DNA from: Carpediemonas membranifera BICM
Lineage: Eukaryota; Protista; Fornicata
Direction: 5' to 3'
Assembly: GCA_019828565.1 (NCBI GenBank)
Contig: JAHDYR010000019.1
Coordinates: 179,984 to 243,983, forward strand
Length of the DNA: 64,000 bases
This document shows, piece after piece, positions 24,781-61,009 of this stretch (the first letter of the stretch is position 1; each line of letters begins with the position of its first letter). The notes under the pieces were generated by a model. It was not told the DNA's origin, did no database searches, and saw nothing but the letters and a program-made list of their open reading frames with translations. The translations under genes and the position numbers were made by a program.

Positions 24781-25032
24781 CTGGCGTTGTCTCAAGAGTT
24801 CAGGATGTGCACTTTATGTCAGCTACAATGCGCGGACCGTTGCGAGACAGCCGCGATCTCCTTAAGGAAGTCGAGTGACTGCCAGAGCCGAATCCATCAG
24901 CGCCCAACGCAAACGGACGCACCTCCGGGGTTGCTAGCCTTCTTTGACTTCACTGCCAAGGGCGATGCGCAGTTTATAGTCAACAGAGTGTGATATTTAG
25001 AGGTTTATGTGGAGGATTCATGTAAAGGTGAC

Positions 25033-25239
25033 TTAAGCTGTCGACCCCCCTGGGATGAACTCCAGAGGACTGAACAGGTTCAGTCTGACGGCCCACCTGT
25101 CGTACACCAGAAGGGTAGCGGACATGAGGGCGTCGGCGATGGTAAGGGCGACGGTTCTGGGCGGGATCTTGGTTCTCGCTCCAGCAGAAACTAGGAATGC
25201 GGCAGCTTTGGACGCGCACATTGGGATGTTGGAGCCATC
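25033..25239 (-). CDS. Possible small hydrophobic protein; start uncertain
   Basis: ORF ...TKIPPRTVALTIADALMSATLLVYDRW... with host-like C-ending codons; no recognised homology. Confidence 0.3.
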   Translation of the reverse strand, partial: DGSNIPMCASKAAAFLVSAGARTKIPPRTVALTIADALMSATLLVYDRWAVRLNLFSPLEFIPGGSTA

Positions 25240-25310
25240 CGGCCGCGGATTGATCACAGTTTAGAGTCGAGTCGCGTCCGAATTGATGCGGCGAGAGGCT
25301 GCTCTTTTTT

Positions 25311-26516: not shown

Positions 26517-26735
26517 TTCGGTTGTTGAAACGAAGGCGTAGGAGAAGATGCTTCCAAGCCAGACAATCATGACGACTAACCCGACAGTGAACTGCGTGAG
26601 GACTGAAAAGGATGCATACGAGTGTCTTTTCTGGGGAGTCGGTCAGTAGACGGAGAAATGGCGACGTACCTTTCTCCATTTGTCCGTTCGAGGTTTTGAA
26701 CTGTCAATGTGCAGGCTAAGAGGTACTAAGAACAA

Positions 26736-26774
26736 GTCTGGGAGGTTCGAACAATGTGTTTATACTGCGCAACA
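26736..26774 (+). repeat. 39-bp terminal direct repeat (left, copy 1)
   Basis: GTCTGGGAGGTTCGAACAATGTGTTTATACTGCGCAACA; 38/39 identical to 27532-27570. Confidence 0.9.
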
Positions 26775-26917
26775 CTGCCCTGGCTCCCTCCTACTCACGT
26801 CTGACAGACAGATCGTCTTCTCCAGGGCTTCCACAAAGCGTCTTCTTCGTGGACGTCAGCACAGCTGCAAACATCACAATCGCACACGTCGTCTCATTGT
26901 CTTCTATTCCACATTAA

Positions 26918-27490
26918 ATTCACTTCTACACTTGTATAGTTCGCCAGAAGCACTTCGCCCGCTGCGGCCAACAGTTGGCTCGGGAGTTCGGTCGCCACCA
27001 TCCCATCGCCACCCCCATTCGCCTGAAAGTCTTCTACGGGAGCTCGGGATTCACCACGCCTGCTGGTATGTTCATTCCTTGCGCGCCATATCGAAAGTTC
27101 GCGAGAGAGATAGTACCCCTTCTCAAGAGGTATAACATTGTCGTCGATCTTAACATGGTTAACGAGGACCGCACCACCGTCGTCTGCCCTCACTGCCACG
27201 CCCCCTACAAGCGAGTTCGTCCGCGTGATGACCAGCACGTTCACCCACAACGTGTGATGCTCTGCGAAAATCCACAGTGCCGTGGTGCTCAGTGGCGCGC
27301 AACAGTTCCTGATGCTCTGAATGTTGATCATCGGGACAAGAGTGCTGCAGAGAACATCCTGTGGCGTTCTCTTGCCACGGAAGATGAGCTCGGTCGCTCT
27401 CCGTTCAGTCGCACCTCGATCCCGCGCCTTCCAACATCATTCCAGTATCATCAATTGGCTAACCGCCAACATTCGTCTACGGACGGATGA
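26918..27490 (+). pseudogene. 5'-truncated Fanzor (TnpB-family) nuclease
   Basis: VFYG (RuvC-II position), [29 protein letters not shown] (RuvC-III), RSPFSR; in-frame TAA upstream, no RuvC-I/WED/REC. Confidence 0.82.
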
Positions 27491-27570
27491 TGTTGTACAG
27501 TTTGGCACTTTGATCGTTCCTTTCAGGCCCTGTCTGGGAGGTTCGAACAATGTGTTTACACTGCGCAACA
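27430..27570 (+). ncRNA. Putative Fanzor omegaRNA scaffold, copy 1
   Basis: Hairpins TTGGC/GCCAA, ATTCGTC-TACG-GACGGAT (UNCG loop) and an 80-nt hairpin 27491-27570 with G-U pairs ending at the element boundary. Confidence 0.65.
27532..27570 (+). repeat. 39-bp terminal direct repeat (right, copy 1)
   Basis: GTCTGGGAGGTTCGAACAATGTGTTTACACTGCGCAACA. Confidence 0.9.
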
Positions 27571-42867: not shown

Positions 42868-43579
42868 TGCCGTTGGTCGACTTGACCTCGAAGACACCGC
42901 CGCTCAGCTCGAGGATAGAAATGTCGAAGGTACCGCCGCCAAGGTCGTACACCGCGATGCGCTGGTCCTTGTCGGTCTTGTCGAGGCCGTAGGCAATGGC
43001 GGCGGCGGTCGGCTCGTTGATGATGCGGAGGACCTCGAGGCCGGCGATCTGGCCGGCGTCCTTGGTAGCCTGGCGTTGCGAGTCGTTGAAGTAAGCGGGG
43101 ACAGTGATGACCGCCTTGTTGACCTCATCGTTGAGGTACTTCTCGGCGGACTGCTTCATCTTGGTGAGGACGTACGCCCCGATCTGGGAAGGCGAGTATG
43201 TCTTGCCCATGGCCGGACTCTCGACCCAGGCATCCCCGGAGTCGCTCTGAACGATGCTGTAGGGGGTTTTCCAGTCCTCAAGCTCCTGGTACCGGCGCCC
43301 TATGAGCCGCTTCGTGGCAAAGAACGTGTTCGCGGAGTTGGTAAGAGCCTGGCGCTTAGCCGGAGCACCGACAAGAGTCTTCTTGTCCTTGGTGAATGCA
43401 ACAGTGGAAGGTGTAGTTCTATCACCCTCTACATTCTTGCAAATCATGGGCTCATTGGTGAACACGCCCACACAACTGTTGGTGGTACCCAGATCGATGC
43501 CAATGACCGATGAGCTCAGCGCTCTACTAAATATGTCGGGCAAATTCACAGGAGAACGCGTAAATAGTGTACTAAGCAT
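41705..43579 (-). CDS. Mitochondrion-type Hsp70 with N-terminal presequence
   Basis: MLSTLFTRS...SRALSS presequence; GIDLGTTNS; mitochondrial/alpha-proteobacterial signatures GDAWV and YSPSQIG. Confidence 0.93.
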
Positions 43580-43593
43580 CGTCACCTTCAGTC

Positions 43594-43734
43594 TGTTGCG
43601 CAGTATAAACACATTGTTCGAACCTCCCAGACAGGGCCTGAAAGGAACGATCAAAGTGCCAAACTGTACAACATCATCCGTCCGTAGACGAATGTTGGCG
43701 GTTAGCCAATTGATGATGCTGGAATGATGTTGGA
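43594..43734 (-). ncRNA. Putative Fanzor omegaRNA scaffold, copy 2
   Basis: Same hairpins as 27430-27570, ending at the element boundary. Confidence 0.62.
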
Positions 43735-44252
43735 AGGCGCGGGATCGAGGTGCGACTGAACGGAGAGCGACCGAGCTCATCTTCCGTGGCAAGAGAACGC
43801 CACAGGATGTTCTCTGCAGCACTCTTGTCCCGATGTTCAACATTCAGAGCATCAGGAACTGTTGCGCGCCACTGAGCACCACGGCACTGTGGATTTTCGC
43901 AGAGCATCACACGTTGTGGGTGAACGTGCTGGTCATCACGCGGACGAACTCGCTTGTAGGGGGCGTGGCAGTGAGGGCAGATGACGGTGGTGCGGTCCTC
44001 GTTAACCATGTTAAGATCGACGACAATGTTATACCTCTTGAGAAGGGGTACTATCTCTCTCGCGAACTTTCGATATGGCGCGCAAGGAATGAACATACCA
44101 GCAGGCGTGGTGAATCCCGAGCTCCCGTAGAAGACTTTCAGGCGAATGTGGGTGGCGATGGGATGGTGGCGACGCCAACCGAACTCCCGAGCCAACTGTT
44201 GGCCGCAGCGGGCGAAGTGCTTCTGGCGAACTATACAAGTGTAGAAGTGAAT
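43674..44252 (-). pseudogene. 5'-truncated Fanzor (TnpB-family) nuclease, copy 2
   Basis: Same motifs as copy 1 ([29 protein letters not shown]). Confidence 0.82.
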
Positions 44253-44574
44253 TTAATGTGGAATAGAAGACAATGAGACGACGTGTGCGATTGTGATGTT
44301 TGCAGCTGTGCTGACGTCCACGAAGAAGACGCTTTGTGGAAGCCCTGGAGAAGACGATCTGTCTGTCAGACGTGAGTAGGATGGAGACAGGGCAGTGTTG
44401 CGCAGAATAAACACATTGTTTGACCCTTCAACAGCACACAGTCAACTCCCTTAACCTGCGAATTAATAACATGGGCCCTCGAGCCGATGATAGCCGGACC
44501 CACCCCAGCATCGTCTGGCCAGGTTTGTCTGGCAGAACTACTCCGCATTTTAGGGAAGAAACGAGAAACGAGGA

Positions 44575-45176
44575 ATGGAGTGGAGCGACGACCTTGTAGA
44601 CCATATTGCGAGCTTAGAGAAGAATTTTGACGATTCAGTATTCGAAACTTTCATCCATGCCCTTGTATCGATGCTTTGCGGTGATATTTCGGTTGAAGCA
44701 ATGGAAGGTTCGTCCCCAGACGCATCATGTCTTATTTAGAGCACGAGTGCCTTAGCTCATTCGAAGAAAAGCAGAGAAATCTCATAGTCAACTCGTTTTC
44801 TCTCCTAGTTACGGACGCGTCCCGCCATCACACCAGCGTGTCCGCCCTGTCCTCCATCATCGGCATGTCTGCTGACCGATGCACCGTTATTGTGGACTGT
44901 ATTGCCCAGTCCCGCCTCCGCACCAAGCTTTCCTTCATCGACTCCAACCCCCGCCCCAAGCTCGTGGACATGGCGTACGTACTCTCATACCAGGTCAAGG
45001 ACCAGCACGACGGGTTCATTGGCGATGACCTGGCCGAGATCACCCTCCAGACTATCGCTGACGGGGAGAAGAAGCCTGTGACCTTTGGGATGACCCAAGA
45101 GATGGTGCTTCATCTCAGGGACGTGCTGAAGGACGCAGTGGAGGAGGTCAGCAGGATCACTAAGGCACGGGGATAG
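44575..45176 (+). CDS. COMM-domain protein (COMMD3-like) (intron 44708-44739)
   Basis: C-terminal PKLVDMAYVLSYQVK...ITLQT...VTFGMTQEMVLHLRDVLKDA; 32-nt GTTCGT...TTATTTAG intron. Confidence 0.75.
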
Positions 45177-51487: not shown

Positions 51488-51932
51488 GCGCTATCCCTCG
51501 GATAAACGACACTCGCTTTCTTTGGTGGCTAAGGGAGTGGCGCCGTGAATCAACGGAACAGTTTGAAGCCTGGAACAGTTGACAGGGTTAACTATCATCC
51601 GCCCAGGCATCGCACTCAGCAGTCATCGCAAGACTTGTTGCAAGGTTGGGGAAGGCTATCCGCCCTCAGCTGTCGTCCCATCAAGCTATCGGGAAGCACA
51701 GTGAAGCTGATGAAAAGGGGCCTTGGGGAGCGAAGCAATGTGGTTATGAGTTTTGGCCATTACTCTGACAGAGTGGGTTTACGTTTAAGGCCCAGCTTTT
51801 GTCTGCCTTGACGAAGCCCCCTGTTCATGAAGTATCATAGAGTGCACAGTGCAAGCAGTAAAGTAGGACTCTCAATCGTCTATAGCAGACTTCAGTTCAC
51901 TATTTCGCAGTTTATGTCACAACAAGGCAGTG

Positions 51933-54431
51933 ATGTGGTATCGCGGGATCACTGGGGCAGAGTTCTTCCGAGAGCATCTCAAGAACGTCCCTGGATTCAG
52001 GGAGCAAGGTATTAGCAACATGTCAAATGAGGAGTTCACGGAATGGGCGGTTGAGAACTTCCGCCCCAGGTTTGAATGGCCGGCGATGCCAAAACGGCCA
52101 CCGCGCAAATGGGTTGTATTAGGACAGCACAAAACCCGTGAAATTCCTCCCGAAGAGAGCGTTGTCACGCCAGTTGAAAAGCCCGCCAAAACTGAATTTC
52201 CACTGAGCCAAAAACCCGAGGCGTCGCGGAGCCCAGCAGCGATGGCTATCGCAGACGATCAGACGCGACAATCCACGTCCAAGGGATACACTGCAGCAGA
52301 GCCGAACCAGGCGGGACCGATTTTCCAAGAAGGGGCCGACGTTGCCAGAGGCACAGAGGCGACTCACGCTCCTCAGGCGGCTGAGATACCCTCGCCGGCT
52401 ATTGAGGGCACCAGACAGGTAGAGGTCACGGCAGCCGGCCCATCTCCTGATGTCACCCAGCCAAGCAGGAGGGTTCCTGAGCTGAAGGTCTCGGCGCAGT
52501 CGACTGGGCCTAAAGACATCGATGCCGCTCACTTAGCCGCCGATGAGGTCACCCTCGCCGGAATGCTGTCAAATCCCGAGTCGCCACGAAGCCCGGCAGC
52601 GATGGCTGTGACGGCTGAGACCAGGCAGGCTACACCCGAGGTGCACAAAGCAGCCGAGTCGGGCCAGACGCCCCGAGTCTTCCAAGCAGATGCCGACCTA
52701 GCTAGAGGCACAGGCGAGACGCCAGCCGTGACCAGTATTTCTCGAATGCAGAAGGTGCAGTCGCCTGCCATTAATGGTTCAGGACCCGTGGAGGTCACAG
52801 CGGTTGGTGCTTCTCCTGATGACGCCCGGCCGAAGAGCGTCCCGGAATTGACGATCTCAACTCAGTCGGCCGACTATCCTGATGCTCGTGACAACGACGC
52901 CTCTCACGTAGCGGCTGATGAGGTCACACTCACTGGAAAGCCCTCAAGTCCCGAGGAGCCCCGGAGCCCAGCAGCGATGGCTGTAACGGCCGCTCAGACG
53001 CGGCAGGCTACTCCCAAGGTGTACTCTGCTATCGAGACGAACCAGACGGCGCGGGTCTTCCAAGAGGGCACCGCCGTTGTCAGAGGCCCAGAGATTCGCA
53101 GTCCAGATGTGACGAGCATCACGCGGGCAGCCAAGGTGCAATCGCCAGCATTAGACAGCACTAGGCCGGTAGAGGTCACAGCTGTTGGTCGACTCGTCAC
53201 CCAGCCCAAGAGGATGCCGGAGCTGAAGGTCTCGGCGCACTCGACTGGGCCTCGTGACATCGATTCCTATCAGCAGGCGACCGACGAGGTTACTCTTGCC
53301 GGGAGACTATCAAGTCCCGAGGAGCCCCGGAGCCCAGCAGCGATGGCTGTAACGGCCGCTCAGACGCGGCAGGCTACTCCCAAGGTGTACTCTGCTATCG
53401 AGACGAACCAGACGGCGCGGGTCTTCCAAGAGGGCACCGCCGTTGTCAGAGGCCCAGAGATTCGCAGTCCAGATGTGACGAGCATCACGCGGGCAGCCAA
53501 GGTGCAATCGCCAGCATTAGACAGCACTAGGCCGGTAGAGGTCACAGCTGTTGGTCGACTCGTCACCCAGCCCAAGAGGATGCCGGAGCTGAAGGTCTCG
53601 GCCCGGCCAGTCAAGGCCCCGACCGAGGAAACTCTCCACAAGTCTGCCGACGAGGTCACCCTCACTGGCAAGCCCGCCAAGACCGAGACGCCCCCGAGGT
53701 CGACCTTCAGGTCCCCCACGACAGTCCGACTGGCCCCCCTCCCCACGCTGGCTGAGCCCGCCCTGAGCACCTCGCTGTCCATGTCGTATGCCCTGCCTCC
53801 CGCCCTCATGCCGTCCTCTGCCGCGCCGCTGGAGCAGAGCCATGATGCGCCGCTGCCCTCGATGAAAATGATCCCGTCCGAGCCGAGTCTCGAGGATTCG
53901 ACTGATTCACTAATGGATCTTGTTACCCGCCTCTCACCCAAAGTCGTCGCCGCGGTCCCCAACCCAGTGGTCAAACCAGTGGTTGCCGCCGCCAGCCAGG
54001 TCCCGGCGATGGCCGACTCTACCCCGCAGCCGGAGCGCCGAGTTGCCCAGTCCCGCATTCCAACGCCGCGTAGTGTACAGCGCCCAGTGAAGCCGCTGCC
54101 CGCTGCTAGAGAGGCGCGGGCTCCTCCCCCAATGGCCACACCAGTCGCGAAAGCCATTTCACCCAACACCGAGCGGACCCCCATAGCGGAGCCGGAGAGC
54201 CCGGTGCAAGAAATGACCGCCTCATTCGAGGCAGACGGGATCGTGACGGACTTCCTGCCTGGCCAGTCTGCCTCCGACCTCGCCGCCAAGGCCAGGTCGC
54301 CCCTGAGCCCAGGCGAGGTGTTCCCCCTCGATCACAAGCGGAGGAAGGCCCACCTTGACACGCTGGTCAAGTACTACGGCGAGCAAAGCATCTTGAGTCG
54401 GTCGGACGAGTCGACCCTGTCAAATTTTTAA
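51933..54431 (+). CDS. Pro/Ser/Thr-rich protein with four ~122-aa tandem repeats; 5' end uncertain
   Basis: Repeat unit RSPAAMAV...RQAT...VFQEG...VEVTA...PELKVS...DEVTL.G. Confidence 0.8.
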   Translation: MWYRGITGAEFFREHLKNVPGFREQGISNMSNEEFTEWAVENFRPRFEWPAMPKRPPRKWVVLGQHKTREIPPEESVVTPVEKPAKTEFPLSQKPEASRSPAAMAIADDQTRQSTSKGYTAAEPNQAGPIFQEGADVARGTEATHAPQAAEIPSPAIEGTRQVEVTAAGPSPDVTQPSRRVPELKVSAQSTGPKDIDAAHLAADEVTLAGMLSNPESPRSPAAMAVTAETRQATPEVHKAAESGQTPRVFQADADLARGTGETPAVTSISRMQKVQSPAINGSGPVEVTAVGASPDDARPKSVPELTISTQSADYPDARDNDASHVAADEVTLTGKPSSPEEPRSPAAMAVTAAQTRQATPKVYSAIETNQTARVFQEGTAVVRGPEIRSPDVTSITRAAKVQSPALDSTRPVEVTAVGRLVTQPKRMPELKVSAHSTGPRDIDSYQQATDEVTLAGRLSSPEEPRSPAAMAVTAAQTRQATPKVYSAIETNQTARVFQEGTAVVRGPEIRSPDVTSITRAAKVQSPALDSTRPVEVTAVGRLVTQPKRMPELKVSARPVKAPTEETLHKSADEVTLTGKPAKTETPPRSTFRSPTTVRLAPLPTLAEPALSTSLSMSYALPPALMPSSAAPLEQSHDAPLPSMKMIPSEPSLEDSTDSLMDLVTRLSPKVVAAVPNPVVKPVVAAASQVPAMADSTPQPERRVAQSRIPTPRSVQRPVKPLPAAREARAPPPMATPVAKAISPNTERTPIAEPESPVQEMTASFEADGIVTDFLPGQSASDLAAKARSPLSPGEVFPLDHKRRKAHLDTLVKYYGEQSILSRSDESTLSNF
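52224..53680 (+). repeat. Coding tandem repeat with ~366-bp period; 52944-53236 identical to 53310-53602
   Basis: Direct sequence comparison. Confidence 0.9.
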
Positions 54432-60736: not shown

Positions 60737-61009
60737 AGTGCTCGGCAGTTTATGGATAGGGGAAAGATGACCTTGCGGGGGGCGGTCTGTTGTGGCCCGG
60801 GCCCGGGACCTTACATCCTGCCTGTGTCGGTATTGCTGGCCTGGGCGGGCAATATCTGGAGCTGAACCTCAATTCACATAAGCTCACGTAAACAGCAGCA
60901 AAACCGCGCCCCGCGCGGAATGGGGTGACTCATTACCTGATTATATGGCCGCGGTAGCAGCCCCCGCCTGGCAGCGGTGGTGCTTAACCTGCACCATGAT
61001 CGTTCGCTG

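Follow-up and report, generated by a model that had tools for sequence, protein, structure and literature searches.

To our knowledge, all documented carriers of Fanzor nucleases are DNA transposons. Among the Fanzor1 proteins, SpuFz1, GtFz1 and PpFz (PMC3627910, PMC10432273, PMC10711439) combine a catalytic triad of DPG, shifted Glu and RD with a TDG motif and a length of about 630 aa, and the Fanzor1 family from the flagellate Carpediemonas membranifera that we describe here shares these features, together with a predicted three-stem RNA at the right end that includes the terminus. The Carpediemonas family differs from them in its second zinc pair (Cx4C), in having direct terminal repeats where those elements have terminal inverted repeats (TIRs), and in a conserved motif lying 13–21 nt off the end where those elements have an adjacent TAM. 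SfAV is likewise a Fanzor element without its own transposase. A homing model predicts that such a nuclease brings no benefit to elements that lack excision (PMC13565253). We found no literature pairing Fanzor with Carpediemonas or Metamonada, nor did the pairing occur in the supplements searched; the family extends Fanzor1 to Metamonada.

The window, by which we mean the whole 64,000-nt stretch of C. membranifera DNA that was analysed, contains two copies of what we call family A. Copy 1 occupies positions 26736–27570 on the forward strand, between the host genes galE and MAP65, and copy 2 occupies 43594–44438 on the reverse strand, between mtHsp70 and a COMM-like gene. An earlier note, made from the letters of the window, had described two near-identical units in unrelated flanks, and alignment bore this out (98% identity, one 6-nt indel). 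Its end point for copy 2, 44434, is corrected to 44438 by a 5-bp target duplication on the reverse strand, at 44439–44443 on the left and 43589–43593 on the right. The mtHsp70 ATG lies 14 nt beyond the element end. The two copies lie 16 kb apart and are each other's closest relatives, with a private change common to both 65 nt from the left end, and both units carry a 32–39-nt direct repeat at their two ends.

Both window copies are derivatives of the same internal deletion. The unit had been described as 5'-deleted, which did not hold: the lesion spans approximately positions 211–1629 of a 2247-nt copy, and both ends are kept. The same junction was found in eight copies among those read, and in copy 1 it falls at 26938–26940 (forward strand), where about 1420 nt were lost and 1 nt of filler remains. 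What follows (26940–27490, forward strand) is a C-terminal Fanzor1 remnant without RuvC-I, WED or REC, as the earlier note had stated. The motifs which that note quoted are present in a 190-codon open frame at 26918–27487, and include FYG, NEDRTTVVC with the shifted Glu, a CxxC..Cx4C zinc finger and RDKSAAENI of RuvC-III; in the forward-strand remnant, the Gly lies at 27038–27040, the shifted Glu at 27164–27166 and the RuvC-III Asp at 27335–27337. The first residues of this frame, HFYTCI, are noncoding left-end DNA fused in by the deletion. Because they lack RuvC-I, the window copies are, judging by their sequence, nuclease-dead and cannot encode an active nuclease.

We note several other features of the window. 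A 32-nt GT-AG intron in the COMM-like gene (44706–44737) was spliced in three runs. For positions 43073–43525, read contigs contain a second mtHsp70 form, 97% alike and with a different 5' end, which may be a paralogue or come from another strain. A GC-rich small repeat of about 80 nt lies at 60887–60965, with an 85% match in another locus read (L004), and tandem coding repeats of about 366–375 nt lie at 52211–53602 within an 833-aa frame that had no Pfam match.

The count of two copies in the earlier note proved a large underestimate. A genome search gave 188 DNA and 330 protein candidates, which fell into three groups: A, the family of the window copies, B and C. The terminal repeat of A had 233 genome matches and that of C had 123, compared with 0 for the control in each case. 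The C. membranifera genome holds more than 100 copies of family A, plus two sister families. A fourth family, D, is represented on a JGI metagenome contig (L051) by an element that is complete at 2346 nt, so that the architecture is common to four families at 43%–67% protein identity, one of them from an independent metagenome. Searches of metagenome and viral contigs by protein and by terminal pattern found no relatives. Full elements are 2.2–2.6 kb long with a single gene each, and nearly all A copies are internally deleted. Among the loci read, which were the best BLAST matches and not a random sample, no A copy had an intact gene, one B copy did (L035, 634 aa; KAG9394109.1, 634/642 aa), and so did the D element (P0046, 646 aa). 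The proposal that the window unit is non-autonomous and recently mobile, with a longer parent elsewhere, therefore stands in outline, but the parent is also without a transposase: none lies inside the 2.2–2.6-kb elements. As for a full-length parent, longer A copies exist, but the only intact gene among the genome loci read belongs to sister family B.

Sister families also left traces in the window. A left-end fragment of family B lies at 24989–25261 (forward strand), with no right end. It includes an extra segment also found in four other loci (L045, L049, L021 and L041), and a spurious 193-aa frame overlaps it. A solo left unit of family C lies at 51828–51894 (67 nt, reverse strand), with 6-bp inverted termini and its own 5-bp duplication. 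Family C solos probably outnumber full elements, since approximately two thirds of the C-end matches were unpaired among the first 100 listed.

The encoded protein is supported as a Fanzor1 by its motifs, with only a fragment left in the window copies. The fingerprints that Yoon et al. gave for Fanzor and Fanzor1 (PMC10711439) are the motifs found here in the longer copies, and the Fanzor1 assignment of the earlier note gained support from them. Families A–D all have the RuvC-I motif GFDPG, which is deleted in both window copies, and the TDG motif of the WED domain. The catalytic Glu stands six residues before the zinc finger (E-x6-C) in all families, with FYG or AYG upstream, and longer copies have Gly at the canonical RuvC-II site. 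The zinc finger is followed by RuvC-III in the order CxxC..Cx4C..HRDK, with a spacing that departs from the regular expression of Yoon et al. The two intact frames exceed 600 aa, which fits the long REC of Fanzor1. Fanzor2/IS607 elements are marked by a serine recombinase partner and by insertion without a duplication, whereas the 2.2–2.6-kb elements have no second gene and make a 5-bp duplication.

Similarity searches point to a very divergent member of this group. A match to PF07282 (E = 0.013) fell below the cut-off, and a PDB sequence search with a single protein or a profile gave no Fanzor match, only Cas12f at E 0.33. When a structural model of the family D protein was compared with the PDB, the seven top matches were all Fanzor (PpFz, SpuFz, GtFz; best E 7e-4), in line with the earlier note, although the model is of low confidence (pLDDT 48) and the TM score in the Fanzor matches is 0.2. 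A language-model search returned TnpB/Fanzor-type clusters from giant viruses, fungi and algae at 0.96–0.98. Among 1.8 billion representatives, we found no sequence-level relatives outside Carpediemonas except one metagenomic sister gene. Separately, we observed that the NCBI annotation of Fanzor pieces (P0001, P0036, P0034) calls them cytosine deaminase or joins them to Cdc73 and Smc gene models.

The right end is predicted to encode an omegaRNA. In copy 1, the predicted scaffold (27455–27570, forward strand) has two short hairpins and a terminal stem of 80 nt that ends exactly at the last base of the element. The last 116 nt of family A fold with a z-score of −6.8 on the element strand and −3.1 on the opposite strand, and z-scores range from −2 to −7.6 across families. 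Families C and D have the same predicted three-stem order, and B has a hairpin plus a long terminal stem; UNCG-type loops cap the second hairpin in the predicted folds of A, C and D. Almost no compensatory changes were seen within families, whose copies are too alike for covariation, and there was no Rfam match near copy 1. Element sequence was present in contigs of the three runs with the spliced host intron, although contigs cannot reveal a small RNA. If the prediction is correct, the deletion derivatives in the window can still supply this omegaRNA.

The ends of the elements resemble parts of long terminal repeats (LTRs). All four families start with TG and end with CA, and each repeats 32–34 nt of its right terminus, in direct orientation, just within the left end. 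Each end is itself a small TG..CA unit of about 40–67 nt in A, C and D, and the B left end is often lengthened to about 160 nt. The tract after the left unit is rich in purines on the opposite strand (17, 15, 18 and 18 of 20 in the four families), adjoins TG and ranks in the top 0.4%–3.5% of windows. In copy 1, this tract lies at 26775–26794 (reverse strand; 17/20 purines in the reference copy), next to the TG of the left unit, and the right TG..CA unit lies at 27531–27570 (forward strand), its last 32 nt being at once the terminal repeat and the predicted stem's 3' arm. Copy 2 has canonical ends, with a 43-nt TG..CA left unit at 44396–44438 (reverse strand). Solo left units carry their own 5-bp duplication. 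One A solo has left-type outer bases and right-type inner variants, which fits recombination between the repeats.

In each of the four families, fixed differences separate the left unit from the right one, and across 26 copies none of 24 variant bases was common to the two terminal repeats of a copy. A homogenised left end, made of right-end sequence, occurs once in the genome, in copy 1 (26736–26774, forward strand; one exact genome-wide match to the junction). Copy 1 is also atypical as an insertion, with no 5-bp duplication and a target-motif-like site (26711–26719, forward strand) displaced to 25 nt upstream, the family norm being 21. We also considered the internal repeat as a CRISPR-like mini-array and rejected this, as the repeat occurs just twice and its inner copy is always followed by one and the same sequence, which has no match to the target motif in B–D. 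Two further oddities concern the termini. In one copy (L005), the right junction is clean and the motif is in place, but the left end has lost its first 14 nt, the part in common with the 4.55-kb elements described below, and has a 9-bp duplication and filler in their stead. In many copies, among them L041 and L031, the final 9 nt of the A terminus recur 2 nt upstream of the Fanzor ATG.

The first 14 nt of family A connect it to a second kind of element. Among the first 100 matches listed for this 14-mer, 11 were direct pairs 4551–4555 bp apart, which have the appearance of LTRs belonging to a compact retrotransposon that is known by position only. Examples lie at G000 C14:153900-158600 and C3:174100-178800. 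In copy 2, the first 14 nt resemble the terminus of this element of about 4.55 kb with one change. The genome contains 1519 reverse transcriptase (RT) and 716 rve (integrase) candidates, and none of the 150 best of each fell inside the 4.55-kb pairs. No purine tract precedes the 14-mer in these pairs, as would be expected if it were the 3' end of an LTR on the opposite strand, and the pairs do not share the other family A terminus. By inspection, there was no TGG primer site after the 5' unit of the elements, nor did one follow the 14-mer in the 4.55-kb pairs. At three places (G000 C11:577536-577568, C13:393610-393644 and C15:129033-129066), 4.55-kb elements were head-to-head with a family A left end, 5–7 nt from it.

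Insertion sites are defined to the base. An exact 5-bp duplication flanks 19 of the 24 distinct A copies with both flanks, 6/7 B copies, and five C full elements or solo units. In family A, the motif GCAGKWTW has its start exactly 21 nt upstream of the left end, as it does for copy 2 (44451–44459, reverse strand), and GCA was present in 25/27 flanks read. Genome-wide, the motif was at −21 in 82 of 148 14-mer sites, a total that includes non-A pairs, compared with 0 in the control. It lies 19–20 nt before the family B left end, including the fragment in the window (−20, at 24969). In family C, the motif is reversed and stands 7 nt before the duplication in 7/7 left ends, including the solo in the window (51907), and the same holds for D. 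Two loose ends in read contigs have the same motif offset. A host ATG lies within 40 nt past the right end in 11/33 copies compared with 3.5% in intergenic controls. No conserved bases that could form a TAM adjoin the duplication in the family flanks, and a relaxed version of the motif fell in intergenic DNA no more often than its reversed control. The motif is also found near the right ends of A and B elements, where it could replace the displaced target site. The head-to-head placement of 4.55-kb elements and family A left ends suggests that both insert at one host site, in opposite orientations. Two fixed positions flanking one motif resemble the behavior of Tf1, which inserts at two fixed offsets on either side of the Sap1 motif (PMC5741268).

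Copies on the same contig are more alike than expected. They differ by 7.1 substitutions compared with 13.3 expected (p < 5e-5), and the nearest relative was on the same contig for 16 of the 21 copies that have a same-contig partner. Seven pairs, compared with 0.9 expected, shared a deletion class on one contig (p = 4e-5, flank-sharing pairs removed), and the clustering of sister copies spans 8–110 kb. This similarity reflects local hopping or local gene conversion. Four-gamete conflicts amounted to 22% and rose with distance, and one copy (L037) is a chimera with a C left end and a B right end at a C-type site, its duplication kept. Copies do exchange sequence, although chimeras and conflicts might also come from template switching during reverse transcription. 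No GT-AG or CT-AC ends were seen at the deletion junctions by inspection, so there is no intron-loss sign of an RNA step. Swapped or shared flanks in two groups of neighbouring copies (L022, L034 and L043 on contig C65; L016 and L020 on contig C13) record rearrangements between them.

The explanation that we prefer, and to which we give about an even chance, is a non-autonomous Fanzor1 element that relies on an integrase in trans, has LTR-derived ends, and has copies rewritten by local break repair. The element would be the 2.2–2.6-kb unit with a Fanzor1 of about 630 aa as its sole gene and the omegaRNA built into its right end, and it would reach new sites through a gypsy/rve-class integrase. 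The ends are TG..CA, the 5-bp duplication is exact, the motif offset is fixed and no transposase lies inside; this insertion chemistry and targeting suggest a gypsy-class integrase in trans. We infer the enzyme in this way, and with it a host DNA-binding protein at the motif that would set the site, as Sap1 does for Tf1. The ends would derive from LTR parts, with the left unit comprising the purine tract and a mini-LTR whose outer 14 nt correspond by position to the terminus of the resident 4.55-kb element. Copies would then be broken and repaired, mostly from nearby copies, leading to filler deletions, inter-family chimeras, solos and local similarity. The copies display this break-repair pattern, and their mosaic interiors suggest frequent repair from neighbours that was plausibly started by Fanzor, which would act as the cutter.

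The substrate of the integration step may be cDNA made by the reverse transcriptase of the partner, which we rate a little short of even, or excised DNA, which we rate only slightly lower. LTR integrases act on free linear ends, without excision, and a gypsy partner therefore implies cDNA. In such a route, the 14-nt match would capture the nascent minus strand of the partner, the purine tract would prime the plus strand, and the 32-nt repeat would serve the second jump, leaving the ends unequal. Tentatively, and at somewhat less than even probability, we can picture an OMEGA nuclease that is parasitic on a gypsy retrotransposon, using the partner's reverse transcriptase and motif-tethered integrase, with the 5' leader of a host gene as the guide. 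Such a parasite would have retained only the purine tract, the 14-nt LTR-end match and the 32-nt repeat, the last doubling as the 3' arm of the guide-RNA stem. Against the preferred explanation stand the lack of shared variants between the repeats and the single homogenised left end genome-wide, as well as the 4.55-kb pairs, which share one terminus only.

The preferred explanation accounts for local similarity by the retro route only with added gene conversion, and it is here that a composite-like cut-and-paste DNA transposon, which we consider unlikely on balance but a serious contender, has its strength. Two tiny TG..CA units would flank the Fanzor, and an unlinked Ginger2/TDD-type transposase would excise the element and reinsert it nearby; Fanzor would cut the empty donor and repair would restore the element (restorative homing), with deletions as abortive repair and LTR-like features as relics. 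Clustering at 8–110 kb would then be local hopping of the kind that P, Ac and Sleeping Beauty display (PMC2874221), a simpler account of the local pattern than a gypsy partner gives, and the two ends evolve independently. A 5-bp duplication is what TDD-4/5 produce and TGT opens the ends of Ginger elements (PMC2836005), KolobokP is a DNA transposon with direct repeats, solos and a nuclease (PMC9587614), and homing benefits only elements that excise (PMC13565253). However, a candidate transposase was not identified, the inverted termini are just 3–6 bp, and the empty-site joint was not found in four runs, of which contigs only were searched. This account also leaves unexplained the purine tract of four families and the 14-nt identity with the 4.55-kb elements.

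It is very improbable that Fanzor itself cuts the target with an element-encoded guide starting in GCAG. The A duplication does occupy positions 17–21 counted from the motif G, matching the SpuFz1 cuts after 16/17 and 20/21 (PMC10432273), and the motif is present in A and B ends. However, the motif is reversed in C and D with the cut 7 nt upstream, which a guide cannot give, positions 6 and 8 of the target consensus do not agree with the candidate guides, and precise TG..CA joints fit integrase chemistry. Least probable, and largely refuted by the unshared variants and the single homogenised form, is an ordinary TRIM-like non-autonomous LTR element with a standard two-jump cycle and Fanzor as an antisense passenger, which would account for TG..CA, the 5-bp duplication, the purine tract, the solos and the homogenised ends of copy 1 as the expected product of such a cycle, but not for the fixed left/right differences in four families or for the failure to see a TGG primer site.

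Compared with known mobile elements, the Carpediemonas family combines features of several groups. With Ty3/gypsy TRIMs and Tf1, it shares TG..CA ends, a 5-bp duplication, a purine tract, solos, and a fixed offset from a host motif near genes; it differs from them in that its units are 40–67 nt (A, C and D) and neither identical nor homogenised, no tRNA primer site was seen, and sister copies cluster locally. With Ginger2/TDD (PMC2836005), it shares TGT..ACA ends (A and B) and the 5-bp duplication of TDD-4/5, but the TIRs of that group are 50–180 bp, or 40–270 bp across Ginger/TDD, compared with inverted termini of 3–6 bp here, and no transposase lies inside. The closest known architecture is that of KolobokP (PMC9587614), which likewise has terminal direct repeats with short inverted ends, solos, and an endonuclease as cargo. 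KolobokP differs in its repeats of 450–660 bp, RR..YY ends, own transposase, lack of strong target preference, and His-Me nuclease. Among Fanzors, a carrier with retrotransposon-type integrase marks has not been described before. More than 80 natural sites show insertion that is exact to the base with respect to a short motif, an intact and very divergent nuclease of 634–646 aa is now at hand for assay, and the family offers a direct test of the homing model. Either a Fanzor here rides, for the first time, on a vehicle of the retro type, or the family points to an integrase-type DNA transposon of a kind not described before, its ends derived from LTRs.
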